From Hyaloraphidium curvatum SAG 235-1 (lineage: Eukaryota > Fungi > Monoblepharomycota), in assembly GCA_025558095.1 (NCBI GenBank), contig JAIVFI010000037.1, positions 372,001-436,000 on the forward strand: 64,000 nt of DNA. The letters run 5' to 3'. The position numbers were made by a program, and so were the translations under genes. The stretch's first letter is position 1. Every line of letters starts with the position of its first letter. The notes under the pieces were generated by a model. The model made no database searches. It was not told the origin of the DNA and saw nothing but the letters and a program-made list of their open reading frames with translations. Shown here one piece after another: positions 1,564-21,237 of this stretch.

Positions 1564-1576
1564 TAGAGATCTGATC

Positions 1577-2272: not shown

Positions 2273-2694
2273 CGTGTTAGTGGGCGGCCGGGAATGGGGC
2301 GATTCTGACCGATGACTGGGCGTCGGGCTTCGCAGGAACATGCAACTCAACAGAGAGAGAAACACACGGTCTTCACCTCCCTCAATCTAGCAACGCAATG
2401 CAACACGAATTCCACCCAGCTAATCCGTCTCCACGACCACGGCGGGCAAAAGCCTCCAGTTTGCCGCCTGCTCCTCAACCGGCCGTGACCCCATCCACCG
2501 GCCGCAGGCCCCTGACCACGATTCCAGGCTCATTGGCCAGGCTATTTATCGCGCCCTGCATTCGAAGAAGCTTCTGTTTGGGCGCCCCGGCCCGGTGAGA
2601 GGAGGACGAGCTCCGGCGGGCGGCAATCCCGAATGAACCGTATCTCAACGCCGCGACTTCTGTTTCCTCCAATCTCCAAGACGCGGCCGTCGCG

Positions 2695-2820
2695 ATGCCC
2701 CGGCTCGCGACGAGCATCACGTTCATGTTCGCCGACCTCCCGCTCCTCCTGCGCCCCGCCGCCGCCGCGGCCGCCGGCTTCCGCGCCGTCGACATCCAGG
2801 TGCTCGACGCCGACCCGCGC
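2695..2820 (+). pseudogene. hyi: Hydroxypyruvate isomerase, N-terminal fragment (42 codons)
   Basis: MPRLATSITFMFADLPLLLRPAAAAAAGFRAVDIQ matches the Hyi start (MPRFAANLSMMFxExPxLxRxxAAAxAGFxAVE); homology stops at about 2820. Confidence 0.8.
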
Positions 2821-3046
2821 CCGCTCCGGCCGCGAACTCGGCGTTCTCGGGAACACCGTCCTCGAGCGAGGAGATTGGCGGCGGGAGCCACGGGAAGAGC
2901 GCCAGCATGTCCTCCCCGGAGAGGTGCACCGGCGCTGGCGGCCCGGGTTGCCCAGAGGTCGGCGGCGCGTCAAGATTCCCCAGAGACACGCTGTCTCCAT
3001 CCTTGGCGGTGCTCTCCGTGTTTCCATTGGCCGCGACTGCAGGCAT
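2821..3046 (-). pseudogene. N-terminal fragment of the GRL/DUF3537-like 7TM family
   Basis: EDMLALFPWLPPP matches EDELLALFPFPP (33944 gene) and EWLVLFPTPP (21238 gene); truncated at the Hyi junction. Confidence 0.6.
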
Positions 3047-3059
3047 GTCCACGAAATGC

Positions 3060-3175
3060 CGCGGCCATCCGGTACAGATCCAGAGCCAAGGTTAGATTGA
3101 CTTCTACGGCCTTGCCGTACTCGTAGCAGAGACCGAGGGCGTTCTGGCCGTGCGCGCTGCCCTGGTTGGCCGATC
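3060..3175 (-). pseudogene. Single Sel1-like repeat fragment
   Basis: RSANQGSAHGQNALGLCYEYGKAVEVNLTLALDLYRMAA is a canonical Sel1 repeat; it has no start or stop of its own. Confidence 0.75.
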
Positions 3176-3559
3176 GGTGCTCCTGGGCGCGGGGCTGATG
3201 GTCTCGAGCACGAGTGTCAACACGTACCTCGTGGATTGCTAGTGGGTTCCTTGCCGCGCCGGCGTCGTCGGAAGTAAGGGGACTGACGCCGCCGCGCGCA
3301 GCCCAAAGGCCTCGGCGTCCATCATCTCCACCAACAACCTCTTCCGCTACCTCGTCTCGGCCTCGGCGCCGATCTTCGTGCCGTACATGATCGCGGCCAT
3401 GGGCAACGGGTGGACGCAGACCTTCTTTGCCGCGCTGAACCTGCTGGGGTGGCTGGGCGTGCTGGCGGTGTGGAAGCTCGGGGGAGGTGGAGGGCGAACG
3501 CGGCGGCAAAGGCCGAGGAGAAGGCGGCGGCGAAGGCGGCGGCAGAGGGCGGCAGCTAG
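3172..3559 (+). pseudogene. MFS transporter (DHA1-like), last two exons only
   Basis: LLGAGLMVSSTSVNTYLVDCY|PKASASIISTNNLFRY...MGNGWTQT with an intron at about 3242-3301; a 1-nt shift in the G-run near 3482 restores KLGGRWRANAAAK...GS*. Confidence 0.75.
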
Positions 3560-4399
3560 AGGGTGCCCTTTTCGACCCGGCTCTGGAAACGCCATTGTAC
3601 AGGCGGATGCCATGGAACTCGATCATTCTTTCGAACGCGGCGATGCTCGGGAGCACGACGCGTGTCCAGTCATCAGGATATCAGGAAAGGGGAAGGGGCC
3701 GTTTAGACGCCCCGTCAAGAGGACGGGTGGAGGCAGGTCCATCCACCGTTCCGCCCGGCGCGGCATGAAGCTTATGCCAGGGCAAGATGCACTCTTCAAT
3801 CCGGCACCGCGAGTCGATGGTGGCCGCCGATCAGATGTTTACCGCGCTCGCGCGCTGCCCGCGTGCCGCGCGATCAGGAGCGCCTGCGACGCGTCTGCGA
3901 GGTCCGCGAACGCGTCCGACGGCCCGCCCTGCTTGGAGAAGTACGCCTCGAGCGGGATGGTCCCGTTTGCCCAGTTTTGGGGGTCCGCGTGCGGGCCGAG
4001 CGAGAGGAAGAGCGGCAGCACCTTGCAGCGCAGCGCGCGCGCGAGCCCGACGATGTGCGAGATCGAGCTCCAAAGATGTCCGTATAATAATCGCAGGCTT
4101 GTGATGGCCAATTTTGAGGCAGCGGGCGAGATGGAATGCGTACGAAGCGCACTCGGGGAGTTTGGGCACCCGCGTTCGCGCCCGTTCGCGCCCCGGGCAA
4201 CACGACGGAAGCCCACAGGGCTCCCGCTCGCACCTGCAGTCCGGTCGCCCGCGGTCGGACACCAAAACGGAAGCCGCAGCTGTTCTTTGCCGTCTTTTGC
4301 GCCAACGCGGCCGCGGCGGCGGCGCTTCCTGGTGCACTGGCACGCCGTTGAACTCTCGCGGCGCCCCTCGACTCTCAACAAATGGTGGCCTATCCCGTC

Positions 4400-5910
4400 T
4401 CCCTGACTCCAAGACCGTGCGGGGACTTATTGCCGCGCTTTTTCAGAGCTCTGGCGGAGGTATCGAAGCGCCAGACGGTGCTGCCGGCTCGGCGCCCCGC
4501 GAACACGTGGCGCTCGAGAACGGCGGAGCTCCGGCGGGCAACGTCGCCGGGGCGGGACCCAACGTCCAAGAGGCCGAAACCAGCGTCGACGATCAGCAGG
4601 GCGAGGCAGGAGGGGCCGGCGAGGCCGGCGGAGAAGCATCCGGAATGGCCACGTCATCGTAGGTGGAAGCTGTGCGTCAAACGATCATCGCGCTCATTCG
4701 CCCGTCGGACAGTGCTCCCAGCTCCGATAGGGCAGCCTTTCAGGTACTCCTTGCGCCCCGGAGCCGGTGCCTCCTCTCCGCTCACCATCGATCTCGTTTG
4801 CAGGGATATCGGGGCTTCTTCAGGGCGTTGAGACAGGACTGGGCAGCGCAGGAGCAAGCGGGCGAGCCTGCCGCGCCTCGCGGATTGGAAGCATTTATGA
4901 AGTTTGATGCGGCCTACGTTGCCGGGAAGGTGCCCAACACCAACGTCGGGACCCCTGGCGAGGAGCCCGCGCCCTGGGCCCTCGGCGTCACCGGCAAGCC
5001 CGGCAAGATCGACGACGATTGGCGAAGTCGCATCTCCTCATTTGCCATCGCAAGCGCGCCCAAAGTCGTCAAGAAGGGTTCGAAGGGCGACAAGCCGCCG
5101 TTGCCGACCAGTCTGCCCCGGCCTGCCACCGAAACGCCGATTGCGGTGAGGAGCACGGTCGGATTTCAGGTCTGCTGCAGTAGCTTACAGTCCGTACAGC
5201 AGCAACCCGCCCGGCCCGCGCTGGACCCGGAGCTCTTAGTTCGCCTCCACAGCGCCTTCGAGTCCTCGAAGGCGCTCAACACCGTGGAGGCCCCGGCTGA
5301 CGACCACCCGGACCGTTGGGCTTGGGATGCCGTCTTAGAGAAGGGCGCCAAGGACCCGACCGCCGCCGAGAAGAAGCCTGGACGGGCGGAGCTGCGACGG
5401 GCGATCTTGGATGTCGGCATCGACCCGCTGATATGCAAGATCTCCGGCAATTGGAACATCACCAAACTGCAGATCATTCTCTTCGAGCTCCTGAAGATCA
5501 TCGTGGGTTCTTGTTCGCGGTGGCGGCATGGATGCTGACGGGAGCTTGTCGCCCAGGGGCGCCCGAGCCTACCCACCGCCTCCTCCCCGATCGGCGCCAC
5601 CAGCGACACCACAATGCCCTCCGCATCCTCCCCTTCTGCTGGCTCGGCGGCGACGGGCGCGGCGGCGGGCGCGGCGGCGACGGGCGCGACGGCGGGCATG
5701 GCGGCGACGATCGGCGCGACGGCGACAGATGCGGCGATCGGCGCGGTGGCGACGGGCGCGACGGCGGGCACGACGGCGACAGGCGCGGGGGCGGGCGCGG
5801 GGATCGCCGCGGCGACGGCGCCCTCGTATGCTTCTGTTGTCGCCCCTCAGGCTTCCAACCCCTCTACTGCTGCCGTTGGTGCCCGTCTTGTGTCGGTGTC
5901 TAGCCTTTGA
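4400..5910 (+). pseudogene. Multi-exon hypothetical gene with in-frame TAG at 4660 and an Ala/Thr/Gly-rich tail
   Basis: ORFs 4114-4662 and 4663-5538 are in the same frame; intron-like segments at 4744-4803 and about 5503-5556; start uncertain. Confidence 0.4.
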
Positions 5911-7870
5911 TTGACGCGATCCTCTTTTCCTAGGGAACCATTGCCCAGACCCCGACCCGTGGAACCCGGCGAAACCAAGACTTAGCCGGCATTTCCCCGC
6001 GCACGCCTCCTGAGCAGGTTTGCGATTGGCGCGACGATTCGCTGGCCTTCCTGACGTCACCCGCAGAACGCAGTTCCCACGGCCGCGGGCAGAAAGAAGC
6101 CCGTGAGGAACCTGTTCCCGGCGGCGGACGATGGCAGCAAGTAGTTGAACACCTGTAAAGTCAGCAGTGCCCCACGGGGATTTTCATTGAACGATCGTCG
6201 CGCCACATTCGCCCAGATCGTCGCATTCACAAAGGTCCCCCGGTCTGCGCAGGTCGCAACCAGCAGTTCCTCCCGGAGAGGAACATGGCCAGCCGGCTCC
6301 GCGGACCCGGCTCCAGGTTGCAGTAGGCACCCGACGTCCGCGGAGCCCGCCGATCCCGGCGCCGTGCGCTTCCTTCTGCGACAGGCTCTGGTCCTCGCGG
6401 GTCTCGTGCTTTTCCCCATCCTACCGGTTTCACGGGTCGCACGCGGAGCATTTACGTGCGAACCGACCGCCAGTTCGTCGTTGCTCGGGAAATCCGGGGA
6501 TTTCGGATAGTTTGGCCTGGAAATCAGCGCCGCTTGCGTTGATCAATCGGTGAAGTCCCCAGGAAGGCCCTCTTCACGTCTCCTGCCCCTCAATTTCGGT
6601 TGCAGGGGATATACGGATGTTATGCTGCCCAGGAACGATGCCTTTTCTCGTGAAGCGAGCCTGTTATTGCGGAAGTTGCGCGGAAATTTCCGGCCTCCTC
6701 AGGAGCTTCAGCCATGCCCGCGGAACTCGCCGCGGCGGGGCGCCGACGCGTCCCTCCAAGCGCTGCTCGACGCGTCGCTCGCCCCGTTTGCCACCGAGGG
6801 CCGACCTGGAGCGGGAAGCGCGTGATGCCGGGCGCGCGACGGCGGACGACCCCGAGGGCGGCCGGCTGCTCGCGTGGCCGGCGTGGAGGCGGCTCGCGGC
6901 CGTGGTGCGCCGCGCGCCTAACGCGACGAGCCAGGCCGAGGCGAAAGCTCGCTCGCCGCGATCGGGGACTGCTTCGGCGCGGACCGCGGCTCGCTCTTTG
7001 AAGTCGAGGACGCAGGCCGGACATCGCTCCTCACCGTGCGGCGACTCCGGCGACCCCGTGCGTCGGTCGAGTACGCGCACGGGCTCAAGTGGACAAGGAG
7101 GAGGACGCGAGCAGGGACGCGTTCGCCGCCCTCTCGGCCGAAGTCGGGCGTGCGCCTCCCGCCACCGCGGAGAGATCGACAGGTGCTGGATGCCCGCCCT
7201 GGACCGCCGCGCGCTGCCGCTCCTCCCCGCTTCCCACCCCGCCCTCCGCTGGTCCTCCATTCCGTGCGACGACCCCCTCCCGCCCCGCCTCCCGCCGATA
7301 AGGACCGCGACGCCCCACCTGGCCTGTGGGCGCCGTGAGCCCGCCCCTCGTCGTGCCCTCCTCGTGCCCTCCTGCGGCGGCATCCAGCACTGCTCTCCCG
7401 CATGCCTGGCCGTGCTCTCCCGCTTCCACACCCCGCAGTGCTCCGCGACCTCCGCCGCCCCTCCCCTCCTCGAGGGCACCGTCCTCCTCCCGCCGCCCTC
7501 GCCCTCTCGGGCCCCTCCCGCGGCCCCGCCCAACCCGCACTGCATGCGCGCGCGTTCCCCATCAAGCTGTCCACCACCGGCACCCTCCTCCTCACCAATG
7601 CGGACAAGGGTCACAGCCGTGTCCATGTGAGCTGCGCGTCGCTTGACGGAATCGCGTCTGCCAAAGAGGCGAGACCGCGATGGACTGGTCGTGAATATAC
7701 CGTGCCAAATTCGTAAAATCCTAGTCGCTACGGATATTGCGATGCACGATCCACTGCTCCTTCGACTACCGCTGTCCGCGTGAGCCGTGCCTCGCTCAAT
7801 GGAATCAAATCTGTCGTCGAAGAAAATGAACAACGCAAGCAACGCGATGAAGAGTCGCGGATCACCGGGT

Positions 7871-8164
7871 TCACGGCCTTGAAATCAGGATCAACATCCC
7901 TCCCAAGGCGTCGGCGTCCTCGAGGGCGAGTGCAAGCTCGGGCAAGCCCATGTCGCGCAGGGCTTGCCCAAGGGTTTCCTTGCGGGCCTGGAGGCCGTGG
8001 TGTGCCTCTGGGGAAGCGTTTATTGCGTCCCGGAGGGCGCGGCGGAGGGCTTCGGGGAACTCGCCCAGATGGGCGGTGACGATGGCGTTGGCGCGGTCGG
8101 CAGCGGCGGCGGCCCCTGCCGCGTGCCCGGGCGCGGGGGCCTGGAGTTGATCGTTGTGCGCCAT
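7871..8164 (-). CDS. 97-aa stand-alone copy of an unrecognised helical domain
   Basis: MAHNDQ...DRANAIVTAHLGEFPEALRRALRDAI...ARKETLGQALRDMGLPELALALEDADALGGM aligns with 8497-8787 and with the repeats at 14540-15887. Confidence 0.7.
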   Translation of the reverse strand: MAHNDQLQAPAPGHAAGAAAAADRANAIVTAHLGEFPEALRRALRDAINASPEAHHGLQARKETLGQALRDMGLPELALALEDADALGGMLILISRP

Positions 8165-8496
8165 ATTCTTGGAAAGGATTCGAGGACGGATAGCGCGCGA
8201 ACGAGACGGGAACGCGTGCGACGGGTGACGTGTCGCCTGCTTTCTGATGGGAGCTGCCGAACGTCCCAAAATCTCCCCTAACCACCGGTGGCGGCGCGAT
8301 GGACGTCTCGTGAGGCTCATCTGTACCACGGAACTCTACTTCACTCCATCTACTGTTCGAAATCGTCATGTTTTCCTCACAGCAGTGGTCCCCGGGCGGG
8401 TGCCCTCCTCCCCCGTGCGCACCCGACCGACCGCGTCTTTCCCAGAGGTCAACGACATAGCCGATAAGATCGCCTTTAAAGCCACAGCTCACCACA

Positions 8497-8787
8497 TCAG
8501 TGCGTCTCAACGTAAGCGAGAAGCCCGCCCATAAGCCCGGCGTCCACCAGAGCCTTTGCCATGTCATCCAGCTCCAAGGCGAGCAGAACCCGGCGCAGGG
8601 CCCGCGTGCGGGCGTGGGCGTCGTTGACAGGGATGCCGGCGATGGCGTCGTGGAGGATACGGAGAAGCGTCCCGGGAAACCTGCCACCGAAGAGTGCCGC
8701 GACGATCCCTCCAGCGGCTGCGGCGGCATCCTGCACGGCCCCTGCCCCGTTCCCGGGCACAGCGGCCGGAGTCTGGATGTTGGCCAT
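8497..8787 (-). CDS. 96-aa stand-alone copy of the same domain (tandem paralog)
   Basis: GIVAALFGGRFPGTLLRILHDAIAGIP...ARTRALRRVLLALELDDMAKALVDAGLMGGL; complete ATG-to-stop ORF. Confidence 0.72.
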   Translation of the reverse strand: MANIQTPAAVPGNGAGAVQDAAAAAGGIVAALFGGRFPGTLLRILHDAIAGIPVNDAHARTRALRRVLLALELDDMAKALVDAGLMGGLLAYVETH

Positions 8788-9057
8788 CGTTTCTTCTATC
8801 AGGATTGAGGCGGTGCGGACGCGTTCACGCGTTCGTAGGGATGACGCGTCGGCGGCGTTGTGTGCTCTGGGAGCCGACTAGTATTGACTCAAACGAGCCA
8901 CCACCGGGAGAAACGACCACCTGTGGTTTCTACCCTCAACGTGCGCGCGTTGTTACGTCCCGTGCGACCTGGAGAGCACGCCGTTCCGTTGGGCGCCGTC
9001 CTAGACCTTCGTCCTTGGCGCATACAGTCCCGAGTCTCCCTCCAAACAAAGGACGCC

Positions 9058-9716
9058 ATGGTAAACGCGCAGGATTTAGCCATCGCCATCACTCACCAGT
9101 GTCCGCATCTAAGAGCGGTCAAGGGGGCACGGAAGCCGGGGGCGGACCCATTGCTGGTCCTCAAGGCCACGTGTCGCACGGAGCGGCGCATGCGGACGCT
9201 CCAGGAACACAAGCGGCCCACGGCAACGCCATTGACGCCACCGGCGGTGGGGGTGGAGCCGGACTGGATGGCCAGGCGGGAGTGGAGCCGACTACAGCCG
9301 CGGGAGGAGGAGTGGGAGCGGGGGCGGCGGGCGGGGAACATGTTGCGGACTCGTGAGGCGTTCTTGGCCTGCCATGCTTTCCGAGTCGTGCTGATCCACC
9401 GCTCCGTACGGTGTCGTCTTCAGCCAGGTGAACAGCTACAGGCTCTCGTTCCAGGTGCGTCGACAGCGCTCTCGCTGGGAGGGGCATGATTCTGACGTGT
9501 CTGGGGCTCAAGACCTTTCTCCTGTGGAAGAAGCGGGTGGAAAAGGCCGGCATCGACCTCACGGGCAGGGAGTTTTTCCATCTGTTCGACACTGCGTTCA
9601 ACGCAGGCCGCATCCCTGGCGTGAACGGAGCCCCAGCCGTCTCCGCGCCACTGACCGCCGAGGAGGCGGAATGGATCGAGGAGTGGAAAGAGAAGGTGCG
9701 AGCCCGCGGCGACTAG
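9058..9716 (+). CDS. Hypothetical multi-exon protein
   Basis: ATG at 9058; intron GTGCGT..CTGAC..AG at about 9455-9511; last exon TFLLWKKRVEKAGID...EWIEEWKEKVRARGD*. Confidence 0.4.
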
Positions 9717-10270
9717 GTGGATCGGCGGCGCAGCAGCAGAGAGAGTACCGGTGCGGCACATGTGTTGCTGATGGGGTAGAGACCATTACAAACCAAAGCT
9801 AGGGCGCCCGGCCGCAACACCTGGGGGCCAATCAACGGCCCAGCAAAGGCTTCGACGGCTGCATCTCGCCACCCGCAGCCAAGGCACATCGGTCGTCGAA
9901 GCCACCTCGGTCCTTGTAGCACGCCGGTGACGCCCCTCTGCGACGGTCCGGGCCAGGCCGGGCCTATTTCGGCTCTAGCCGCCGGACGCGCAGTTGCGTG
10001 TCGCTGCCCGCGGTCGCACGCCCTTCGGGTTGATAGGCCTTTGGTTGGGTTAGTTGCCGGGGTTGAATAGACTTAGCTTCGATGCGTTCGCTTCGGGTTG
10101 CGGAAGAATTCTCAGAAGGGGACGCCGGTCACAGAGTCTGGGTTTCCGACGGTTCGCTTTCCGAACGGAACGATGACTTCTATGAACGGTTCGAGCCCAC
10201 AGCGAGCGAACCCCCGCTCGACTACATTTCGCGCTGCTTATATTGGTCCCGGGCCGCGAGGCTGAGCGTC

Positions 10271-10322
10271 TCCGGATCTCCGGATTCTCCGGATATCCAG
10301 CCCATCTCCGGATTCTCCGGAT
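10271..10322. repeat. Cluster of five TCCGGA palindromes
   Basis: TCCGGA starts at 10271, 10279, 10288, 10307 and 10316. Confidence 0.8.
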
Positions 10323-11521
10323 TCGACACAGCTCCGCTCTATCGCCCCTCTATGACATGTCCCCGATAAGAAAATGGAACGTCGGATAGGAAAATGTTAA
10401 CCCAGGCGGCCCGTGCCGCCACACCTCCACCTCGACTTCCATGGTGCGTTCCACGCACCCACAAAGCGGAGATTCAACACGAGGCAGCAGACTGGCGTCG
10501 ACCCGTAAGCCAGAATAGTGGAGCAGGGAAGGATGTGTCTTCGGGGACGTTGAGCGGATGGCGGAGAGACGTGGGCCGTGGGTTGACGCGATCGAAGCGG
10601 CCCTGCCCTTCGCGGCCGTTCACGCCGCCTACACCGAGGCAATCGGATTCCGCGCCATCGGGCGGCCGACCGGGAAAGGCGCTCGGAGATGGCGGCGGCA
10701 CGAAGAGCGGCGCCGCGGGATCAGTGGCTCGGCAGGTCATGTCCGGGGTCGCTCGGCCCGCGTACTCGGCCGCAGACGGATCCAAAGAAAGCGGAAACGC
10801 CGAGTAGGCCGCCGCTGGTCGTCAGGAAAGTCGTTCCCGTCGGTGCCGAAACCACCAACGACGCGGGACACCGCGAGCTCAGCCAACGGACGCGGAGCGT
10901 CCGCGCCGATGCGGCGTCGCCGATCGCCACCTTGCGATGTGTGCGGTTCCGCCCGGTACCGCCGTCCTCTTTTCGAGGCTGAGAGCACGCCGTGGGGCCG
11001 GAAGAGGGACGACAGGGCCGGGTACGACTGCCGCGGGTCGGCTGCTGACCAACCCAGACAAATTCAACCTCACGAGATTGCGGTGCTCGTCACTTGAACA
11101 GGCTGAATTTCCATGATGCGACTTCGAATACCGAATACTTGCCGATTACCTTCCCGCGAATCTCAAATGCCTGATTTCGTGGAGCATCGTGACTTTGGCT
11201 TTTTCGGGACAATCGACGTTGGGTGCTCTCGCGGAGGGGCGTAAGGGATACGTCTCCCCGAGTAGACGACTCGGACGCAATTCCGTCGATGGGATAGCCA
11301 GAAGAGGCCGGAGACCATCCCGATGGTCCGCGATGACGCCGCGGCGATGCGGGATTCGAGGGCAACCAGCGGGCGATGTGATACCCGGCGCCGGGGGAAG
11401 ACGCGGCTCAATCGACGGGTACCGTTCAACTCCAGCGACTGCCAAATTCTGGGATCTTACCGTTGTGATCCGGCGGGTATCGGCGCGATGGTTTGAAATC
11501 GAAGGGGGGGCGTGCAACACC

Positions 11522-12076
11522 GATTTCGAAGGTCCCTACTGAGCCACCCACACCGGGGCGCGTTCTACGCGTACGGAGCCGACCAAGTCGATGTTGGGCC
11601 ATCTTCTGCCGTGGACAAATCGCGATTCACTTGCCATTGCTGGTCATCCGGCCTTTGGCCGCGCTTGTCGTGCTTGATTTGGCCGCGTTTGTCGTGCTTG
11701 ATGGTCGCGATGGTCGCGAGCTACAGGCGCGCCTTCAACAGCAGACGCGTGGAGTCACGCGCAGCTTCCGCAAGCAAGCGCCAGACAAACAACAATATGC
11801 CGAGGTCTGGAATATCCCTGTGGAATGCCGCAGAATTATGCTTACCAATACGCTTTGGGCATCCGCGCGGATGCGGAAGTCGGATTGGTCAGCAAGCGAA
11901 GCGCGGGCGTCGAGGAGGCGTGTAGCAGGAGGATGAGTGGTAGCTAAAAGCCCTCGAGTCATTCGTATTCGTACAATGGGGCGGGCGTGGCGCACTTCGC
12001 CTCGGGACCCCAGGACGCGCCGCGCGGATTTCGAATATGGTCCCTACTGAGCCACACACAGACCGGCGCCTTCTAC
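11522..12076 (+). repeat. Imperfect ~50-bp direct repeat pair enclosing a 24-bp tandem duplication
   Basis: Core GGTCCCTACTGAGCCAC at 11531 and 12039, flanked by GATTTCGAA and TTCTAC; TTTGGCCGCGYTTGTCGTGCTTGA twice at 11654-11701. Confidence 0.8.
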
Positions 12077-13039
12077 CCGATTGCTGGGCAGATTGCCCCG
12101 GCGGCACCGAAACAACCTCCGGGGCCCGACCGCATCTCACCTAGCACTGTCATTCCGTCGCCGACGCCGCTCTCCAGGGATCGTTGTGCCCGACGGTCGC
12201 TGGCCCTGGCCTCGCCCATGAACCTCCCGAACTAGGCCCATCCATGCAAAACCTGGGTAATGTCACAAGAATGGACGCCAGAATCCGATTTCCCGATTCG
12301 ACCCGTGCAGCACTCGCTGCGCAAAAGGAGTCATACGGTTGAAGGGCCGTATGATCCCCGAACCAGCCCGCGCGACCGACTCCCGTTAACCAGGCGATTG
12401 CGAGCTGCAGGTCCGGCAGGACGATGCGCGATAACTAGAAGCCCTCCAGTCCTTCGCCGCTGATGCAATCGGATTGCTAGATGTGAGGACCAGCGAGTGC
12501 GGACTTGGGTCGGATCGGAGACCGCCGACGACGATCTGGACCTGGACCCCAACTCCTGCGCGCCGTTGTTCCTCCTGCGAAACGCCAAGCGTCGTCGTCG
12601 TGGATGGCACCGAATCAATCCGAAGCATGCTGCCGAGCGACAGAGGGTGGCCGGCGGGCGGGCAGCACGTCACGGGGTCCGGCGGCGGCGGCGGCCGTGC
12701 ACCGCCATGCGGCCCGGAGCCGCCGCGGGGAGGGTCTCGATCCTTGCCGTTCTTGTCGGACCGGTGTGCCGCCACGCCCGGGCCGCCCTCCAGCGCGACA
12801 CGGGCCCATAGCCGGCCGGGAGCCTCGTGCGGAGCGGAGCCGCGCCCGCCGGAGATGGCCGCACGAAGCCCAGCGCCGAGCCGGGCGCGGAGCCGGCCTT
12901 TGGAGTTTCGCGCGCGAAGCTTCCCGGCGGGATGCGCGCTGCTCCGGCGTTGTGCGCGTCGGCCAGGGTTAGGGTTGCCTTTATCGGCGCGGCCCGACGC
13001 CTGCCACGAGGCCCGTCTCCCGCCTGCGTGCCCGTCGCC

Positions 13040-15887
13040 ATGTCTGCCTCCGCCTCTGGCTCCGCCCCGCCGCCGCCGCCCGAGGAGCTGCCGCCGCCGC
13101 CGCCGTTCGAGGCCACGGCACCGGGCGGGCCGTGCGCGCCGTGCGTCCGGCGGGCGAGCGGCAAGGGGAAAGGCAAGCCGTGCGACGGCAGCCGCCCCTG
13201 CGGGCAGTGCAAGAACGACGGCACCGACTGCTTCGACATTCTGCCGTCGCCCGACGCCGGCGTCCCCGTGCCGCCCGCGCCGGACGACGAGAGCTCGTGC
13301 ACAACCCACGGGCGCGAACCGCGGGCGCCCCGCGTCGCGTCGGGCCCGCCGCAGGACCGCCCCGAGCCGGCGGTGGAGGGTCTGCCGACGATGGACAGCC
13401 TGAGGGCTACCGTGGGAGACGTGCTCGGCCGCGCGGGCGAGAGCACCGCCCTGCACGCCGGGGGACCCGGACTCGTCCCGCCTGCCCCGGCGCCCCTCAA
13501 CACGGCTCAGGCGGAGGCGGTGCGGCAGCAGATGGACGACATAACCATCACCGCGCGCCAGATCCCCGCCTACGACGGCCCTGGCGCGCTGCCCGCCGTC
13601 GTATTCACGCTGTGCTGGGGGGCCGCGACGTTCGCGGCCGGCGACGACGCCAACGTTCTCGCCCTCCTTCAACTCGGAATGGTCGGCGTTCTGTTCTTCC
13701 TCTCCCATTTCCCCGTCGATCCCAGGCACGTGTGGGGGACGCGGCCGGGGCGGCGGGGATACACGCAGCCAGCACCCCCCCTGGCGTCCTTCGCCCGGGC
13801 AGGATTGCTATGCTATTCCGGCCTCATGGCTGCGCTCCGCATCGCGGCGCAGGGCGGCGCAGAGGGTTCAGTGGGGCCGAACGCGTCGGTCCTTTTCGGG
13901 GATATCTTCCCGATCTTCGCCCCCGCGACCCGCGGAGGCGTGGACCTCGGCAACGCCACCCACATGACGCTTGTGCGCCTCATGATGGAGTTGTACCTGA
14001 TGTTGGGTGGCCGGGTATTCCCCGTTCACTCGGGGTCCGGCTCTCGCGCGGTTCTCACCGTGCTGGTCAGGATGGCGCGGCGCAGCATCCCCCTCGTGTT
14101 CTACGTCCTGGGCCAGCCCGTCACCATCTACCTCCTCCTCGACGTCAGCTTCAGCCCTTCCTTCCCTCGCGCCCCGCTCGTCGTCTTCATCCCGGCGTTC
14201 CACCTGGAACAGACCCGGATGGGCGAGCGGTACGTTCTTCACCTCGTGGCCTCGGACGCCATCGCGTTTGCCGCGGCCGGCATCTTCTTTGGCACCCAGC
14301 ATGCCCTCGCGACTGTGAGGGCGTTCTGGAACAGGCCATTGAGGACGGCCGCGGAAATTGCCGCTGATTTCGTCGAGTTCCTCAAGGGCTGCACGGCGGG
14401 GGAGCGGGACTTTGCCGAGCGCCTTCGGGCGCAAGGCGTGGCCCTGCTGGACGTGATGGACAGGGTGTGGTGTTTCCGCGGCGGTGAGCACCAGCGTCGC
14501 GGCGCAGCTGGCCACCCGCTGATCGTGTCTTCCCACAGGCGTCGTCATTCACCAACTCTGGGACCTCGCGCACCACCTCCTCACCCTTGCCCTCGGCTCC
14601 GTGGAACGTGACGCCCTGCTCAGCTTCCTCACCGAGCGCATCCTGGCCCTCCCCTCCATGGTGCGGTCCGACCCCCGGCGGCGTCGTGCCGAGCTGCTCG
14701 CCGCGTTCCGCGAGCGGGGGCTGGGCTGGTTGGCCGACATGCTCGTCCAAGAAAGGTGCTTCGGCGCCCTGTCGGCGTGGATCGGCTGGGGACAGGGTGG
14801 CCTTGTCACCGCCGCGCTCGTGGACCGTGCCGTCGAGGTTATCACCGCCTTTTTCGGCGGCTCCATCCCTGCCTCTTTCTTCCCCGTTCTGCGCGGCGCC
14901 CTCCTCGACGTGCCCGCCGGCAACCCCGTCGCCCGCCAGAACGCCCTCCGCGCGGCCCTCCTCGAGGGCGACCTCGGCGAGCTGGTTGCGATGCTGGAGG
15001 CCGCCGGGGCCGTGACCGGGCTGTCGGCTCTGCTGGGCAGGATGGCTGCCGCGGAAGCTGGCGCGGGAGCGGCTGGCCTCGCCAGTGCCGCGCTGATGGA
15101 CCGAGCCGTCGACATCATCACCGACTTCTTCGGCGGCTCCATCCCTGCCTCTTTCTTCCCCGTTCTGCGCGGCGCCCTCCTCGACGTGCCCGCCGGCAAC
15201 CCCGTCGCCCGCCAGAACGCCCTCCGCGCGGCCCTCCTCGAGGGCGACCTCGGCGAGCTGGTTGCGATGCTGGAGGCCGCCGGGGCCGTGACCGGGCTGT
15301 CGGCTCTGCTGGGCAGGATGGCTGCCGCGGAAGCTGGCGCGGGAGCGGCTGGCCTCGCCAGTGCCGCGCTGATGGACCGAGCCGTCGACATCATCACCGA
15401 CTTCTTCGGCGGCTCCATTCCCGCCTCCTTCTTCCCCGTTCTGCGCGGCGCCCTCCTGGACGTGCCCGCCGGCGACCCCGTCGCACGCCAGGGCGCGATC
15501 CGCGCGGCCCTCCTCGAGGGCGACCTCGGCGAGCTGGTTGCGATGCTGGAGACCGCCGGGGCCATGAGCGGGCTGTCGGCGTACCTGGGCACGATGGCTG
15601 GTGGCGTTAAACGTGCAGGCGGCAGAGCCAGGGCCACGCTCATCGACCGTGCCGTCGACATCATCACCGCCTTCTTCGGCGACTCCATTCCCGCCTCCTT
15701 CTTCCCCGTTCTGCGCGGCGCCCTTCTGGACGTTCCCCGTGGAGGCGGCCGCGTGCGCCAGGGCGCGATCCGCGCGGCGCTTCTCGAGGGCGACCTCGGC
15801 GAGCTGGTCGGGCTGCTGGAGGACGCCGGGGCGATGGGCGGGCTGTCGGCACACAGGTTGCTATATTCGCGTCGGCGGCTTGGCTAG
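13040..15887 (+). CDS. Zn2Cys6-like protein with five C-terminal copies of an unrecognised helical domain
   Basis: CAPC-x12-CDGSRPCGQC-x6-C cluster; the 55-nt intron 14484-14538 joins ORF 12827-14611 to ORF 14601-15887 in frame. Confidence 0.75.
14820..15860 (+). repeat. Coding tandem repeat, four units with periods of 276, 276 and 270 nt
   Basis: Anchor TTCGGCG(G/A)CTCCAT at 14853, 15129, 15405 and 15675; the first units look essentially identical. Confidence 0.95.
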
Positions 15888-16200
15888 GGCAAAGTGTAAC
15901 AGAGTTTCCTGTTCTCGGACCTGCCGACTCCATCGCCCGGCTCCTCGTCGACCGCGTCCAGCCGCCCTCCGCCGAGCTCGCCGACCTCCGCTCGCAGCTT
16001 CCCGGGGGCGCACGTTCTAGCTGCCAGCTGGCACCAACGACGAGCTTGGCGGGTCGATCGTGACAAGCCGGGAGCGGATCTCATGAACGACAACGCCGCA
16101 GCTCACCGCAACAGGGACTGTAGCCAGCGAAAATCCGGCGCAGCCGGCCGTGCACAGCGTGACAACTGCGAGCGCGGCAGCACGGCGGTGCGACCCCCCT

Positions 16201-16524
16201 TCACCCCCCCGACGGACACGCCGTCCCGACCGTCACGTACACCCCCGCGCCCTTGAGCACGCTCCACAGCCCCACAGCCACCGTGAACGCCGTCAGCAGC
16301 AGCCCCCTCACGGCGCCGGGGCTCACGCGGAACCCGAGGAACCGCGAGCCGCACGCCTCGGCGGAGGACGCCATGGCGCGGAGCAGCCCGGACCCGCAGC
16401 TGCCAGGCTTGCCGCCGGGCTTGGCGCCCTGCTTTCCGCCCGACGCCGTCAGCTTCGCCTCCGCGCGGCTGCGGCGCCACTCGGCGAGCAGCTCCTCGCG
16501 GCTGCGCGACGCGTTCTCGTCCAT
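16201..16524 (-). pseudogene. Chimeric ORF: unrelated N-terminus fused to the C-terminal TM7 region of the GRL/DUF3537-like family
   Basis: GSRFLGFRVSPGAVRGLLLTAFTVAVGLWSVLKGAGVYVTVGTACP matches the ends of the 21238 and 33944 genes; the first ~43 aa (MDENASRSREELLAEWRR) do not. Confidence 0.7.
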
Positions 16525-16556
16525 CGCGGCAATCGGCGACCGACCTGCTGGAGCGG

Positions 16557-17141
16557 ATGGCCCGCACCGAATTCTCGCCCGACGACAGGGCCTTTGTCGA
16601 ATCCGTGCCCATGTTCTTCCTGGCCACCGTGGACTCGCGCGGCATGCCCACAGTCAGCTTCAAGGGCGGCGCCCCCGGCTTCGTCCGCGCCACGGGCAAA
16701 TCCGAGCTGTGCTTCCCGCTCTACGACGGCAACGGGATGCAGCTCACCCTCGGCAACATCGCCGCGACGAAAAAGGTCGGCCTGCTGTTCGTTGACTTCG
16801 AGAAGCCGCGGCGGCTCCGCGCCCAGGGCATCGCCAGGCACTCGCAGGACCCGGCGCTGCTCTCCATGTTCCCGGGCGCGCAGTACGTCTGCGTCGTGGA
16901 GGTCAAGCACCTTTACGTCAACTGCGGGCGGTACATCGCCAAGGGGCATCTGGAGGTGTCGCCGCACGTGCCCAACGCCGAGGGGAAGCAGCCCCTTGCG
17001 GGGTGGAAGCGGCTGGACGTGATCGGGCCCGTGCTCAGCGAGCGGGACAAGAAGAAGGTCGAGCAGGCGGGGGGGTACATCGGGATCGACAAGTACACGG
17101 GGGAGGACGAGCCGGACATGGCGACGCTGGCCGTGCAGTGA
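16557..17141 (+). CDS. Pyridoxamine 5'-phosphate oxidase-like FMN-binding protein, probably 5'-truncated
   Basis: DRAFVESVPMFFLATVD..G.PTVSFKGGAPGFV, YDGNGM..TLGNI, VGLLFVDFE, NCGRYI; homology extends upstream of the ATG (DLLERM) and then breaks at about 16540. Confidence 0.85.
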   Translation: MARTEFSPDDRAFVESVPMFFLATVDSRGMPTVSFKGGAPGFVRATGKSELCFPLYDGNGMQLTLGNIAATKKVGLLFVDFEKPRRLRAQGIARHSQDPALLSMFPGAQYVCVVEVKHLYVNCGRYIAKGHLEVSPHVPNAEGKQPLAGWKRLDVIGPVLSERDKKKVEQAGGYIGIDKYTGEDEPDMATLAVQ

Positions 17142-17712
17142 GGGCGTGACCGGCTTCAACCCGTGTCCGCTGTAAATAAGGCTGAAAAAGAAGATAGAGT
17201 GGATGATGGGGCTGGAATCCATCCAGAGGCGGCCTCGAAGCACCCGAAAGTCGGGCGCCATCGAAGGCCGAGATCACATCGACCAACTTCGAGCTGGACC
17301 TCCGCCCCCTTTTCGAGCTACACATGCCTCCTGAAGCAATAATGCATCGGATTCCAGGGGCAAATGATATGGCTCTTTGTCTTTGGCCAACGCGGACGTG
17401 GTTCGGTGGCGGTGGCAAACGCGGCAGCGTCCCTAGTGCCCTGCTGCCCTCCAAACCCGCGCGCCCTTTTGCGCTCCATGCCGGCGTCCGCCCGGCCATA
17501 TTCGCCGGTTCGCTTCAGAAAGTCGCCGAGTTGAATTTCCGGGTGCGATTCGTCGGCTGCCGCCACCTCCGCCGAGCGACTCCTGACGCATCGCCGCGCG
17601 TGCCTCCAGGCCGTCTGCGGGCGCCCGCCGCCATTCAACGCGTCGGGCGCCACATTCGTTCTTTGAGAGCCTTGCTGCCCCGGAAACGGTTGGGCGGCAG
17701 CACGCGCCAGCG

Positions 17713-19525
17713 ATGGCGGGCTGCTTTGCTCTCCCCGCGGGGCTCCGCGAGACGCTCTGTGCCGCGTTCGCCGCCGCGCTGCCGGGCAACACCGTCTGCT
17801 TCGCGGAACGCGGTGTCCTGGCATCTTTGCTGGCTGGACGCGGAATGCCCGGCGGGGAGGGCGACCCGCGTTGGTCGCAGCTCTACTCCTCTGCGCCGAT
17901 GGCCGCCCTGGCGCTATGGGTCGGCGCGCGGGTGATCGTGGCGACGACGGGCAACGCGGAGCTGGAGCACACGGTGCCGGCGCTCGAGGCGCACTACCTG
18001 TCGGCCGTGCGGACGGAACTCTCGCGCTTCTGGAAGGACGTCGCCTTGCTGGGCGGCAGGCGCCGCACGGGGTCGATGGACCGCGGCCGCAGGGCCCCCG
18101 GCGCAGCCCTCCGCACCCTGCCCAACCTCGCGCTGCTCTATTCCCTCTCCCTGGCGGCCGGCTTCTCGCTCCTGCTCATGGGCAGGCCCGATGCCGCCCG
18201 TGCCATCACGCGCCACTTGGCCGCCGCCCTGGCGCTCACAAGAGTGCCTGGGGAGCTCCCTTCGGAGACGTTTCCGCGCGGAGCGGATGACCTCCTGATT
18301 GATGAGCACTGGCGTGATGTCTTTTGGCTGTGCATGGCCCTGGACGCGCTGCTCGCCTCGTTCGCCGACGACGACATGGCCTTTGATCCTCCTCGATCCT
18401 TCCCGGACGTGCCCCTGCAACCCCACGCCGTCCTCCTGGCCGCCATCCCGCGCCCCGACGCCGGCCCGCCCAACACGGCCGTGCCCGACGCCGTGGCCTT
18501 CTGCGACCGCCCCCGGTGCAGGGACCTCCTCGGCTTCCTGGACCCGCTGCAGGACGGCATGCCGCCTCCGACGGTGCCGCGGGAAGTCACAGTGCGTACA
18601 GCCTACGCGGACTACATGGACGCCGGCCCCCTGGCGCCCTCCACCGGGCCGGCCTACGCGCTGTACCAGGTCTCGCGGTTCTGCCGCTGGTTGCGGGAAG
18701 AAGCTGGCATGTCCATGCTAGGCGTGCTCGCGGCCGAGGAGCTCCTCCGCGATCCAAACACCCCCAGGGCCACCGACGCGCTCTCGGTGATCCTCCGCGA
18801 GACTCTGCTGCGCAACCCGCTGCTCAGGGAAGCGGTGCGCGGGCGGCGGCATCTGCTCGACGCCGTGGGCGCCATGTCCGCCGCCGCGCCCGCCGCGCGC
18901 ACGGCCGCATGGGAAGCCGGGGACTGGGATGCGCTGGATGCGGACCTGGGCAGGCTGCCGGGGGACGCGGGGCAGGTGGTGCTGGGGTCGCTGGCGCTCA
19001 CTCGGCAGGTGAGGATGATGCTGGTGAGCCCCGAGCCGTTCCAGCCGGGGTGGTTGGGGGACGACGAGGCGCTTTCGTCGGCGGGGGCGTCGTCGGGCGA
19101 CCCCCGCGGCGGAGCGTGGTCGGAGGATCTCGCTGGGGAGGACTCGGACGACGCGGTGTCGCAAGCCTCTGATGGATCGGGCCCTTTGGCCGCCGACGAC
19201 GCCTCCTTCCGGCACGAGATTGAAGCCGCCATGCTGCGTATCTGGTCCGGCTCGCCCTCCTTTGCCGAGGCCACCTCCTGCGCTGCGGGGATCGCCGCCG
19301 GCCTGCGCATGCTCTCGGCGCGCATGGCCGCGCAGGACCTCCGCGGCAACTTCTACCTGCTGACCTTCGGCTCCGCCTCGGCCTCCCACGCCGCATGGCT
19401 TGACCTCGTCGTCCTCCGGCACCTCGGCGGCCCCGCCGCCCTGCACTCGGACGCCGCCACCCGGAGCTTCCTCGAGGACTCGGGCCAGCCGCACCACCAC
19501 CGCGCCGGCCTCCTCCTCCGCGGCC
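17713..19525 (+). pseudogene. Fungal-specific transcription factor middle-domain-like protein, 3' end replaced by the Hyi fragment
   Basis: RDVFWLCMALDALLA resembles the Fungal_trans RRxFWxxxxLD motif; long GC3-rich ORF that turns Arg-rich after 19525, where the Hyi frame begins. Confidence 0.55.
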
Positions 19526-20167
19526 TCCGCCGTGCTCCGCTCCGCCGGCCTCGCCGTATCGCTGCTCAACGTCGGAATGGGCGACTTCCTCGCCGGCGGC
19601 CCGGGGCTGTCGGGCGTGCCGGGGAGGGAGCGCGAGTTCCGCGATGCGTTCGCGAAGGCGCTGGAGGACGCAAGGATATTGGGCGCCCGTGCATTGCACC
19701 TCGGGCCGTCGCGGGTTCCCGCCGGGGTGCCCAGGGAAAGGTGCTTGGAGGCGTATGTGGAGAACACCGAGCACGCGCTGGCGCTTTCGGACGTGCCGCT
19801 CCTGGTGGAACCGCTGAACGCGGTGGACAACCCGACGGTGCTCCACTCAGACTTTGACGCCACCGCCGAACTGCTCCGGACCCGCTTCGGGGGCAGGCTG
19901 AAGCTGCAGTTCGACGCGTATCACGCGGCGATGAACGGCCTCGACCCCGCGGCGGCGTTCCGGAAGCACTTGCCGCTGGTGGGCCACGTGCAGTTTGCGG
20001 ACGTGCCGGGGAGGGGCCCGCCGGGGTCCGGGAACGTGGACTTTGGCGCGTTCTTTGCCGCGGTGGACGACAGCGGGTACGGGGGTTACGTGGCGGCCGA
20101 GTACATGCCAAAGGTGCCGACGGCGGAGACGCTGGGGTGGATGGAGGCCCTTGCGGGGCGTCCGTAA
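19520..20167 (+). pseudogene. hyi: Hydroxypyruvate isomerase, C-terminal fragment (~215 aa, no start)
   Basis: LRSAGLAVSLLN, LLVEPLN, LKLQFDAYH, VGHVQFADVPGRG.PG.G.VDF, GY.GYVAAEY are Hyi motifs. Confidence 0.9.
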
Positions 20168-20192
20168 TAAAGGCAGCTGCCCCGAGCCGAGG

Positions 20193-21030
20193 CTACAGCT
20201 TGAAGAACCCCCTCCTGGGCCTGTCCACGCCGACCGTGGTCTCCGTCACGGGGCACCCGGCCTTTTTCAGCACCTCCCGCTGCTTGGTGGGCGGCACCTT
20301 CATGCAGATGTCTTCGTACGGGGCCAATGACTTGGCGGCGGGGTGGTCCCGCATCCGCGCGAGAAACTGCACCAGGATCGGGTAGAGTTTTGGGTCGACG
20401 AGGTGCCCGCCCCGTGCCCACTCGAGGTTCCGAAAAAAGACAGCGACCGAGACGTCCGCGACCAGCGGGTCCGCCGTGCCGAAGAGGTATCCCCCGCCTG
20501 CAGCCGGCGAATCCCTCAGCACCGATTCCAGGTAGGTGCAGATCTCCGGCACGTCCACCTCCATCACCCTCTTCACCCGCTCCTCGTCCGGCTTCTCCCC
20601 CCACACCGCCCGCCCGATCACCCTCTGGTTGAAGAACCCCCAGACGAACGCCTCGCCCATCCTCGAATCCGCAAACTCCTCGATCCACCGCGCGCGCGCC
20701 CTGTCCGCCGGCCCCGTGCGCGGGTAAGCGGGGCGAGGGAAGAGAACAGCTCGTCGAGGTACTCGCACGCGGCGGTCGAGTCCGGCACGGCGAGCGGGCC
20801 GTCGATGAGCACGGGGACGCGGCGGAGGGGCGAGAGGAGGGTGAACCCGTCGGAGCCGTAGAACGGGGTGATTGGGCTGCCGGGGCGCGTCAGCGCGAGC
20901 CCGGCGGGGCAGGAGGAGCGGCCCACTCGATCTCCCAGCCGAGGCCCTTGAGGTTCAGCGCGATGAGGAGCTTGCGGACGTACGGGCTGGGGAAGGGGCC
21001 GATGACCCGGAAGCGCGGCGTGTCTCCCAT
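20193..21030 (-). CDS. Glutathione S-transferase, bacterial-like; one intron and one 1-nt indel
   Basis: SPYVRK, LSPLRRVPVLID, DSTAACEYLDE, ADRARARWIEEFADS; intron at about 20878-20927; one extra T near 20728 restores PLYPRTG. Confidence 0.85.
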
Positions 21031-21237
21031 GTCGCGTCGCCTTCCGTAGACGCCGTCTCCGCCCAACGGGCCACGGAGATCGGCAGCGAAGCGAATTGAC
21101 GGGGATGAGCCGCGTATTGAGGTCGAGGTGGGCCGCTTCCGCCCTCAAAAGGTTGCAATTTTCAGCGTGTTTTGATCGCGCATCGCCGCCGCATCGATCA
21201 TTTCCGGGTTCTGGGGATCTCACCGTATCCCAGCAAA

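Follow-up and report, generated by a model that had tools for sequence, protein, structure and literature searches.

How does a gene for a hydroxypyruvate isomerase (hyi) come to lie in two pieces, 16.7 kb apart, on one strand of a fungal chromosome? The question is raised by a 64,000-nucleotide stretch of Hyaloraphidium curvatum SAG 235-1 (the window, whose numbering is used below unless a contig is named), part of a small, GC-rich, eukaryotic genome of 31.9 Mb. The reading favored here, with a probability of roughly 0.6, is a recent break-repair insertion of a relocated, ordinary chromosomal segment into hyi, which killed the gene.

The two pieces of hyi

The N-terminal fragment (2695..2826, + strand) begins with the ATG at 2695, covers beta1-alpha1-beta2, and is Hyi-like to 2820 and possibly to 2826. 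The C-terminal fragment (19529..20167, + strand, Hyi-like from 19520/19529) codes to 20164 and ends with TAA at 20165-20167. Searched against all six frames of the whole genome, TIGR03234 matched only these two complementary pieces and one weak, unrelated TIM barrel on contig C21. Model positions 1-34 fall on 2698-2799 (+), and positions 43-254 on 19520-20146 (+). Scored separately, the N-fragment matches TIGR03234 positions 1-34 with E 9e-6 and NF043033 positions 1-33, while the C-fragment matches TIGR03234 positions 45-254 with E 6e-46 and PF01261 with 94.6 bits (cut-off 31.1). The pair resembles the Hyi/OtnI isomerases (xylose-isomerase-like TIM barrel, PF01261; TIGR03234, NF043033) in that the fragments together span the whole model and all conserved C-terminal positions are retained. 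In contrast to that family, the gene is divided, with 16.7 kb between its pieces, and neither piece reaches the equivalog cut-offs (156.7 + 25.2 bits against 353 for TIGR03234, and 140.9 + 26 bits against 325 for NF043033). On the genome-wide search, hyi is the genome's sole hydroxypyruvate-isomerase-type gene, and it is most likely now a fresh pseudogene in two pieces.

The preliminary description had taken the halves to be co-oriented, ordered, and complementary with at most a few residues missing, and both the genome search and an alignment with eight relatives (250-266 aa each) agree with it. In the alignment the pieces adjoin without overlap, and 0-1 codons are absent between them (our own count, row P0005). 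The C-fragment has GC3 of 0.89 with no stops and no frameshifts, and the GC3 of the N-fragment is 1.00. Among positions conserved in at least 90% of homologues, which average 0.9 changes, none of 29 is changed in the C-fragment and two of seven in the N-fragment. The latter two, both E to D, hint at some decay or at a lineage peculiarity and count against the favored reading.

The protein of the C-fragment has one match in the whole genome. No other Hyi-like N-terminal exon was found genome-wide by the six-frame TIGR03234 search, nor an alternative exon 1 near 19.5 kb. Since the genome-wide matches are only these two pieces and the C-fragment is single-match, an origin of the halves from different hyi paralogs, which had been allowed for earlier, is impossible. 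The best relatives outside the genome are 52-59% identical, the closest named ones belong to bacterial metagenome-assembled genomes, and none of the related genomes offers an empty site. Support for an insertion comes from the halves themselves, which complement each other, occur once each, share one orientation, and are separated cleanly.

The inserted segment and its relative 170 kb upstream

The island between the halves comprises 16,702 bp (2827-19528). Both of its ends have counterparts, inverted, collinear, and 93.6-93.7% identical, in a single locus of the same contig (C37) that lies 170 kb upstream: 2827-3064 corresponds to C37:206211-205974, and 16540-19528 to C37:201472-198487. Homology to this locus, C37:198-207 kb, begins abruptly at 2827 and stops at 19528. 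There, the reading frames run on past both boundaries, and the island ends are thus truncated genes and not element termini.

In the left 1.2 kb, small gene fragments, three or four in number, meet at abrupt seams. The outermost is a 238-bp 5'-part fragment of a 7TM-family gene (g422 copy; 2827..3064, - strand), 93.7% identical to its counterpart at the upstream locus, where the donor ORF (C37:205923-207188) extends 977 nt beyond the boundary. The following Sel1-repeat gene fragment (3057..3174, - strand; Pfam Sel1 on ORF 2973-3680(-)) is 90% identical to C37:21346-21463, has weaker copies near several contig ends, and at the amino acid level is 80% identical to residues 743-782 of a 1265-aa ORF. 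It overlaps the 7TM fragment by 8 nt (3057-3064), a seam microhomology. A third fragment (3175..3824, unstranded) is 80% identical to C45:21757-22415, and both of its edges are seams because its neighbors at the C45 locus differ. The fourth (3731..4067, - strand) corresponds to an internal part, residues 146-251, of a 650-aa gene family that has a member at C32:568.1-570.1 kb. DNA identity is 81% over 3866-4067, and a single frame shows 56% aa identity across 113 residues. These seams could also mean a multi-fragment event instead of a single insertion.

The core (4068..16189, unstranded) carries transcribed genes without recognizable families. It is single-copy genome-wide except for short matches of ~40-200 nt to dispersed repeats, the scanned core ORFs hold no Pfam domains, and no source locus for it is present in the assembly. 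One core gene is spliced: its 60-nt GT..AG intron (4741-4800) is removed in the X3 contigs. An abundant X3 transcript runs from 5825 to about 6857. In addition, the core carries a Cys-rich/TM gene with five 92-aa repeats (about 13040-15884) and a tandem array of 3.8 copies of 276 bp (14811-15850).

To the right of the core lies a 3'-terminal fragment of a member of a large 7TM gene family (g518/g422-like; 16190..16400, - strand), with more than 30 genomic matches at 72-83% and with 53% aa identity to residues 461-517 of the donor ORF 196442-197995. The PNPOx-like gene copy (16540..17138, + strand; Pfam PF01243, BLASTP) lacks the first ~47 codons of its homologue, a TM/targeting N-terminus. Its homology starts abruptly at 16540, and 198 of the remaining 199 residues are identical. 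The Fungal_trans-like regulator copy g793' (17710..19528, + strand) is 96% identical in amino acids to the donor ORF C37:200434-198056, which continues 143 codons beyond the boundary. The copy lacks the last 146 codons, and its own frame carries on into hyi, not in the hyi frame, until a stop at 19855.

At the left junction, 2821-2826 (CCGCTC; residues PL) may be hyi or junction filler, so that the exact break is ambiguous. At the right junction, 19520-19528 (9 nt, AAS) are common to the C-fragment side and the homologous donor locus and may represent a 9-nt microhomology. The longest direct repeat between the boundary zones is 8 nt, not end-adjacent, and is reached in 288 of 500 shuffles. The longest inverted repeat between them is 9 nt, reached in 98 of 500.

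The divergence between island and donor is, on the evidence of substitutions and indels, of the type that accumulates under constraint. For the PNPOx copy, dS is 0.10 and dN 0.002 (dN/dS 0.02), and for g793' dS is 0.167 and dN 0.019 (dN/dS 0.11). The polarized amino acid changes in g793 number three in the island copy versus four in the donor copy, and the 1-2-nt indels all fall inside the ~570-nt intergenic spacer between PNPOx' and g793'. When neutral evolution of the C-fragment was simulated at the full per-lineage divergence of 0.05-0.08, its preservation had P = 0.019 to 0.001. The ~3.9 frameshifting indels expected under neutrality add a further factor of ~0.02. Since the truncated copies are undecayed and none of the 29 conserved positions has been lost from the C-fragment, the split is far more recent than the divergence of 6%. 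The insert would then have to derive from a homologous region that was functional and that the assembly lacks, and a second copy of the donor flanks, which would hold the remainders of the truncated genes, was not found in the genome.

Probable break repair and the history of the segment

Captured break-repair fillers are mostly tens to hundreds of bp long. Insertional translocation, or DNA capture at double-strand breaks, is known as NHEJ/MMEJ filler, as in NUMT insertions (PMC2567098). The hyi locus is similar to such captures in its clean interruption with 0-9 nt of microhomology or filler, in having no TSD or element termini, and in an insert of ordinary genomic DNA that ends at arbitrary intragenic positions. 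On the recipient side, 0-1 codons were lost. The left junction has 6 nt that may be filler, and the right one 0-9 nt of microhomology. The difference is that the present insert has 16.7 kb with whole transcribed genes, and its source is absent from the assembly.

In the favored history, a double-strand break would have arisen in the single hyi, between codons 42-44 and the next codon, and would have been repaired via end joining or microhomology-primed repair. The repair would have set one 16.7-kb ordinary chromosomal stretch in the gap, with almost no hyi sequence lost. This stretch would be a piece of a hypothetical gene-bearing region R, without counterpart in the assembly. R would be an older, diverged relative of C37:198-207 kb with the same g422 ... 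PNPOx-g793 order, its middle being distinct and unique and carrying older, small gene-fragment seams. The boundaries of the cutting or copying would lie inside two genes, such that the island starts in a g422-like gene and ends in a g793-like gene. Compared with the ~6% by which R and its relative have diverged, the insertion would be recent. R may since have been excised or lost by deletion or segregation, or it may be unassembled. Observed directly are the anatomy, the homologies, and the absence of decay and of transposon features; the repair pathway, a history of one event, and what became of R are inferred from them.

Read in this way, the hyi locus would be a clean natural case of a large, gene-carrying chromosome piece placed in a gene without transposon machinery. 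Gene fragments that are still intact, next to a relative at 6% divergence, act as an internal clock, which indicates that the move is recent and the source missing. Confirmation of the junctions would make the locus a PCR-testable marker for structural polymorphism in the organism. The locus would moreover show break repair relocating functional genes, and how presence/absence regions or the DNA of relatives enter a chromosome.

Other explanations and the probable loss of an enzyme

The alternative that survives best, though unlikely, places the source in another genome: fragmented DNA of a related strain or species, acquired by a cross, fusion, prey, or uptake, would have been captured at the hyi break. 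The 94% pieces would then be orthologues, not paralogues, of the genes at C37:198-207 kb, and the core would be accessory DNA of the relative. One step would explain undecayed truncated genes with 6% divergence and very low dN/dS, together with the absence from the assembly of the source and the remainders and a 12-kb core without paralogue. Relatives do exist in nature, as a freshwater metagenome run has short pieces with 90-95% similarity. However, the other island fragments are just 80-90% identical to the host and not at a uniform orthologue level, the composition and GC3 of the end genes match those of the host, and a lost or unassembled paralogous region accounts for the same facts. A wider form of the idea, in which the island was captured whole from a related genome or from a dispensable region moving between individuals, or is a cargo unit without terminal repeats or recombinase, is regarded as similarly doubtful. 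If foreign or inter-individual capture were true, the locus would be a transposon-independent transfer, horizontal or between individuals, of a 16.7-kb transcribed segment with genes in a microbial eukaryote, caught early.

A mobile element that moved cargo, whether a Helitron, a Pack-type TIR element, a Starship-like giant, or an unknown cut-and-paste unit, is improbable. The locus shares with Pack-MULE/Pack-CACTA, Helitrons, and Starships a cleanly interrupted host gene and an insert that is large, begins and ends in gene fragments, and has orphan genes in its core. On the other hand, the ends lie inside ordinary genes that continue at the homologous locus. The terminal inverted repeats and target-site duplication of a TIR or Pack-type element do not rise above chance. 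Helitrons have 5'-TC ... CTRR-3' termini, insert between A and T, and carry a 3' hairpin and a RepHel protein. The island starts CGGCCGCG and ends GCGGCCTCC, with termini CGGCCG... and ...GGCCTCC in a CTC|GCC host site, and the scanned ORFs have no Rep/helicase domain. Starships carry a DUF3435 tyrosine-recombinase captain at one end and are usually >20 kb. The island is 16.7 kb, and no captain-type Pfam match occurs in the scanned ORFs. The same ORFs were free of transposase, RepHel, DDE, tyrosine-recombinase, and RT domains in Pfam, a scan that covered the longer ORFs, mostly of >150 codons, so that an intron-rich gene could be missed. Dispersed copies of the island, or others with both boundaries, are lacking in the genome. 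C37:198-207 kb is the sole long match, and genes continue past both boundaries there, which does not fit a multi-copy element. Retrocopies lose introns, carry a poly(A) tail, and consist solely of mRNA-derived content. The island retains the 570-nt intergenic spacer and the 60-nt intron (4741-4800) and is therefore DNA-derived, not a retrocopy or RT-mediated insertion.

The preliminary description had offered a cargo-carrying element and a complex repair event side by side. Its insertion stands and repair is now favored, whereas the Helitron, Pack-type, and giant-element options are not supported, given ends in ordinary genes, no terminal repeats above chance, no dispersed copies, and no transposase domain in the scanned ORFs. 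Its failure to find a TIR, a frame-restoring TSD, or a transposase is borne out for the boundary zones compared and the ORFs scanned, as are its gene fragments at the ends and its orphan core. The dispersed core copies with shared boundaries that it had envisaged were not found by genome search.

An assembly artefact, in which the organism has an unbroken hyi and the assembler misplaced 16.7 kb into it, has little to recommend it. Elsewhere on contig C37 there is a locus similar to part of the island, no contig among the Logan short-read contigs listed bridges 2826/2827, and exact-product look-ups gave 0 matches. The short-read contigs neither confirm nor refute either junction as assembled. 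Nevertheless, a misjoin would have to exit hyi and re-enter it at the same codon 16.7 kb on. Moreover, the sole similar locus differs from the island ends by 6%, and the homology ends precisely at hyi with no switch inside the repeat. An independent short-read assembly has the island-specific variants at 2924-2984 in one X1 contig, and the depth of X1 contigs is the same in flank (7.3-8.7) and island (8.2-8.6).

Equally hard to sustain, and a little less probable still, is an old split with the C-fragment kept by selection as a regulator fusion, as half of a two-piece enzyme, or behind a 16.7-kb intron with nested genes. Full conservation of the C-fragment agrees with it, an in-frame GT(2843)...AG(19466) pairing exists on paper, and the g793' frame runs into hyi. 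However, the C-fragment is without beta1-alpha1-beta2 and without an upstream in-frame ATG, the g793' and hyi frames differ, and the sole intron seen in the island is 60 nt. The N-fragment, the only Hyi-like N-terminal exon in the genome, lacks an X3 transcript contig (2553-2746).

MMBIR and chromoanasynthesis produce templated insertions and complex rearrangements, and such chains are known (PMC8421209, PMC13065848). The locus resembles them in its chained segments related to different loci with abrupt seams, in the 8-nt overlap at 3057-3064 and the possible microhomology at 19520-19528, and in two segments from one nearby intrachromosomal locus with orientation and order kept. Template switching (MMBIR/FoSTeS) that copied the present C37:198-207 kb and other loci in one recent event is nonetheless the least probable account. 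All candidate templates differ from the segments by 6-20%, and the pattern of differences bears the mark of selection. The greater part of the island, including the 12-kb core, has no genomic template. Copying errors cannot yield a 6% divergence that is focused on synonymous and intergenic positions, and had it arisen after the event, the C-fragment and the truncated genes should have decayed.

With regard to metabolism, the organism would recently have lost its sole Hyi/OtnI-type isomerase. The original enzyme may have been either a hydroxypyruvate isomerase or a 2-oxo-tetronate isomerase.

Two pieces of a single hyi gene

The assembly of Hyaloraphidium curvatum comprises 31.9 Mb in 55 contigs, and the first 24 kb of the window have a GC content of 59-76%. 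The gene for a Hyi/OtnI-type isomerase (hyi) lies here in two pieces, which were searched separately throughout and never as a joined sequence. The first piece, hyi-N, comprises the first 42-44 codons of an ORF at 2695-3126 (+). Its residues match the N-terminus of hydroxypyruvate and 2-oxo-tetronate isomerases, and it aligns to positions 1-34 of TIGR03234 (E 9e-6) and 1-33 of NF043033. The second piece, hyi-C, belongs to a frame at 19364-20164 (+) that becomes hyi from 19520 or 19529, and it matches PF01261 with 94.6 bits and TIGR03234 positions 45-254 with an E-value of 6e-46. In an alignment with relatives 250-266 aa long and 52-59% identical, the two pieces abut without overlap, and the preliminary description was thus correct in proposing one hyi gene split into complementary halves. 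A six-frame TIGR03234 scan of the whole genome recovers nothing beyond hyi-N and hyi-C except a weak, unrelated barrel on another contig (C21), with no alternative first exon near hyi-C, and hyi-C has a single match in the genome. An origin of the halves from different hyi paralogues is ruled out, as no further hyi-like gene exists in the genome.

The interval between the pieces, termed the island, spans 16,702 bp at 2827-19528. When compared to the homologue P0005, the join 'DPR' + 'AAS' + 'AVLRSAG' gives the exact homologue length, and 'DPRPL' + 'AVLRSAG' falls one residue below it. Either hyi, where a hydrophobic residue is expected, or filler could account for the 6 nt at 2821-2826, and the 9 nt at 19520-19528, common to the donor locus described below, could be microhomology. 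The top hyi matches are 52-59% identical, and the closest relatives with a name come from bacterial metagenome genomes, consistent with the gene having come from bacteria long ago. No empty hyi site was found in metagenomes, where the best hyi relatives are just 52% identical. Downstream, the region 19520-24507 contains, after hyi-C, a GST-like gene at 20196-20954 (-) and a DAO-type FAD oxidoreductase gene at 22870-24507 (-).

Composition of the island

DNA searches and local BLAST of the island against the genome show that a single locus on the same contig, 170 kb upstream (C37:198-207 kb, the donor locus), resembles both island ends, inverted and with the order kept. Positions 2827-3064 are 93.7% identical to C37:206211-205974, and 16540-19528 are 93.6% identical to C37:201472-198487; compared base by base, the homology begins at 2827 and ends after 19528. 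The donor locus contains the 7TM-family gene g422 (C37:205923-207188), a PNPOx-like gene (C37:201725 to 200874), and g793 (C37:200434 to 198056), a 793-codon regulator called Fungal_trans-like from an Atlas feature match only. The donor frames continue past both homology boundaries, g422 by 977 nt and g793 by 143 codons, which argues that the island ends are truncated genes (g422' and g793') rather than element termini. The gene fragments reported earlier at both ends are thereby borne out. Between the two donor pieces lie 4.5 kb with acyl-CoA dehydrogenase and alpha/beta hydrolase genes, which have no counterpart in the island and no distant homology to its core.

The left-hand divergence is very uneven: between 2827-3064 and C37:205974-206211 (3974-4211 of the extract L003), the first 97 nt are identical, followed by 13 differences in 61 nt and then 2 in 80 nt. 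The PNPOx copy (16540-17138) starts within coding sequence and is missing the initial ~47 codons; relative to its donor counterpart (8874-9725 (-) of the extract L002), it lacks the hydrophobic N-terminus and is otherwise identical at 198/199 residues. It could be translated from Met91, in which case the pair would differ in localisation alone. The donor gene g422 is very highly expressed in the run X3 (2,368-nt contig, depth 205). Together with g518 (L002:4442-5995, +) and a window gene at 21700-22780 (+), g422 (L003:3923-5188, +) belongs to one large, fast-evolving family with >30 DNA-level genome matches, many near contig ends. The family was labelled GRL/DUF3537-like at first reading, and Pfam gives no match for the donor ORFs g422 and g518.

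The left-hand 1.2 kb of the island also contain a Sel1-repeat fragment at 3057-3174 (90% identical to C37:21.4 kb, overlapping the preceding piece by 8 nt), a piece at 3175-3824 with 80% identity to contig C45:21.8-22.4 kb, and an internal fragment of a 650-aa family at 3731-4067. All edges are abrupt, and the seams are real since synteny with C45 is absent. The 3' end of another 7TM-family member lies at 16190-16400.

The 12-kb core (4068-16189) is single-copy in the genome except for short matches of ~40-200 nt to dispersed repeats, and its scanned ORFs contain no Pfam domain, as expected of the orphan core first described. It is transcribed in X3, a run that is RNA-like because of a spliced joint at 4740/4801 (60-nt GT..AG intron), with a spliced gene at ~4239-5071 and an abundant transcript from 5825 to ~6857. 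The latter, a 1,033-nt contig at 5825-6857 with a depth of ~103 (the highest in the island), has no ORF with a coding-type GC3 signature and might represent a non-coding RNA or else encode a small protein. A further gene at ~13040-15884 (+) has a Cys-rich N-terminus and a hydrophobic region followed by five 92-aa repeats. The domain has no Pfam match and is encoded by a 276-bp unit (x3.8, 90% identity, 14811-15850), and the near-identity of the two central copies suggests a recent copy-number change.

Divergence and age of the interruption

The island and the donor locus differ by 83 transitions and 86 transversions without a directional C-to-T excess, which rules out RIP-like mutation of the duplicated ends. 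PNPOx has a dS of 0.10 and a dN of 0.002, and g793 a dS of 0.167 and a dN of 0.019. All 1-2-nt indels fall in a 570-nt spacer, where divergence reaches 13-22%, and the differences are strongly shaped by selection. When a third paralogue on contig C41 serves as the outgroup, the amino-acid changes fall about evenly on both copies (3 in the island copy, 4 in the donor copy), therefore the truncated copies have not drifted as dead DNA. In addition, hyi-C has no stop or frameshift, none of its 29 positions conserved at >=90% is changed, and GC3 is 0.89 in hyi-C and 1.00 in hyi-N. In neutral simulations with the per-lineage divergence taken from dS (0.05-0.08), the state of hyi-C arises at P = 0.019 to 0.001; ~3.9 frameshifting indels are expected under neutrality, with P(0) = 0.02. 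The undecayed state of hyi and of the truncated copies argues that the hyi break and the truncations are much younger than the 6% island-donor divergence. A split this young excludes the present C37:198-207 kb as the template, and the insert would have come from a functional, diverged homologue of the donor locus (R).

Origin of the insertion

The interruption is real as far as the assembly goes. It most likely reflects a relocation of the break-repair type, with ordinary chromosomal DNA moved into the sole hyi gene, and not a new element, and a single recent event is the simplest account. A double-strand break in hyi would have been repaired by setting a 16.7-kb segment of R into the gap, through insertional translocation or a microhomology-primed copy, and R would later have been lost or have segregated away, or would be missing from the assembly. 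On this account the small seams within the island would be older features of R. The insertion resembles known break-repair phenomena such as NUMT or filler capture (PMC2567098) and MMBIR/chromoanasynthesis chains (PMC8421209, PMC13065848). The right junction is spanned by a 25-nt unit (x2.2, 19503-19556) rich in CGCCGGCCTCC, and this flanking GC-rich low complexity may have favoured microhomology-based joining. What this account leaves unexplained is solely where a fresh, undecayed insert with 6% divergence came from: R, the remainders of its truncated genes and another copy of the 12-kb core are absent elsewhere in the assembly. In the donor locus, the parts corresponding to these remainders are C37:198056-198486, 201473-201725 and 206212-207188 for g793', PNPOx' and g422', respectively. 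An excision scar was likewise rejected, as genome searches with both donor flanks gave distant family members only. Capture of the island from a related genome is a less probable rival that fits the same facts.

A rival reading is an old split in which hyi-C has been maintained by selection. Against it, hyi-C lacks a start codon and the N-terminal barrel elements, its frame differs from that of g793', and hyi-N has no transcript contig (none from X3 over 2553-2746).

An assembly artefact is unlikely, because the assembly comes back to the same hyi codon and the island ends are 6% diverged from the sole similar locus. Among Logan contigs of four runs placed on 1001-6800, those of the DNA run X1 extend over every bin, with equal depth on flank (7.3-8.7) and island (8.2-8.6), and one X1 contig carries island-specific bases at 2924-2984. 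Loose contig ends at 2827 and 3057/3058 correspond to paralogous loci, and no contig bridges 2826/2827 among those listed. An X3 loose end at 2363 marks no seam, since the sequence there resembles a gene of contig C7 over 21 nt by chance. Exact-product look-ups of two junction-spanning ORFs in public assemblies found nothing on record; a freshwater metagenome contains short related pieces. As far as the assembly goes, the island structure appears internally coherent.

The preliminary description had left the choice between a mobile element (Helitron, Pack-type or giant) and a complex repair event; the latter is favoured, as a repair-type relocation, and the former is disfavoured, failing every defining feature tested. 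The reported lack of TIR, frame-restoring TSD and transposase is confirmed: between the two boundary zones, direct and inverted matches are no better than expected by chance, the termini and target site are unlike those of Helitrons, and the scanned ORFs contain no transposase, RepHel, RT or tyrosine-recombinase domains. DNA searches of the whole assembly found no other copies sharing the island boundaries, and no tRNA or Rfam features lie near the island as integration targets. The 8-nt direct repeat CCGCTCCG at 2821 and 19537 was rejected as a TSD, as it does not adjoin the right end, would delete 4 residues and is at chance level. The island retains both an intron and an intergenic spacer, which rules out a retrocopy. 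One-step template switching from the present loci is contradicted by the divergence pattern.
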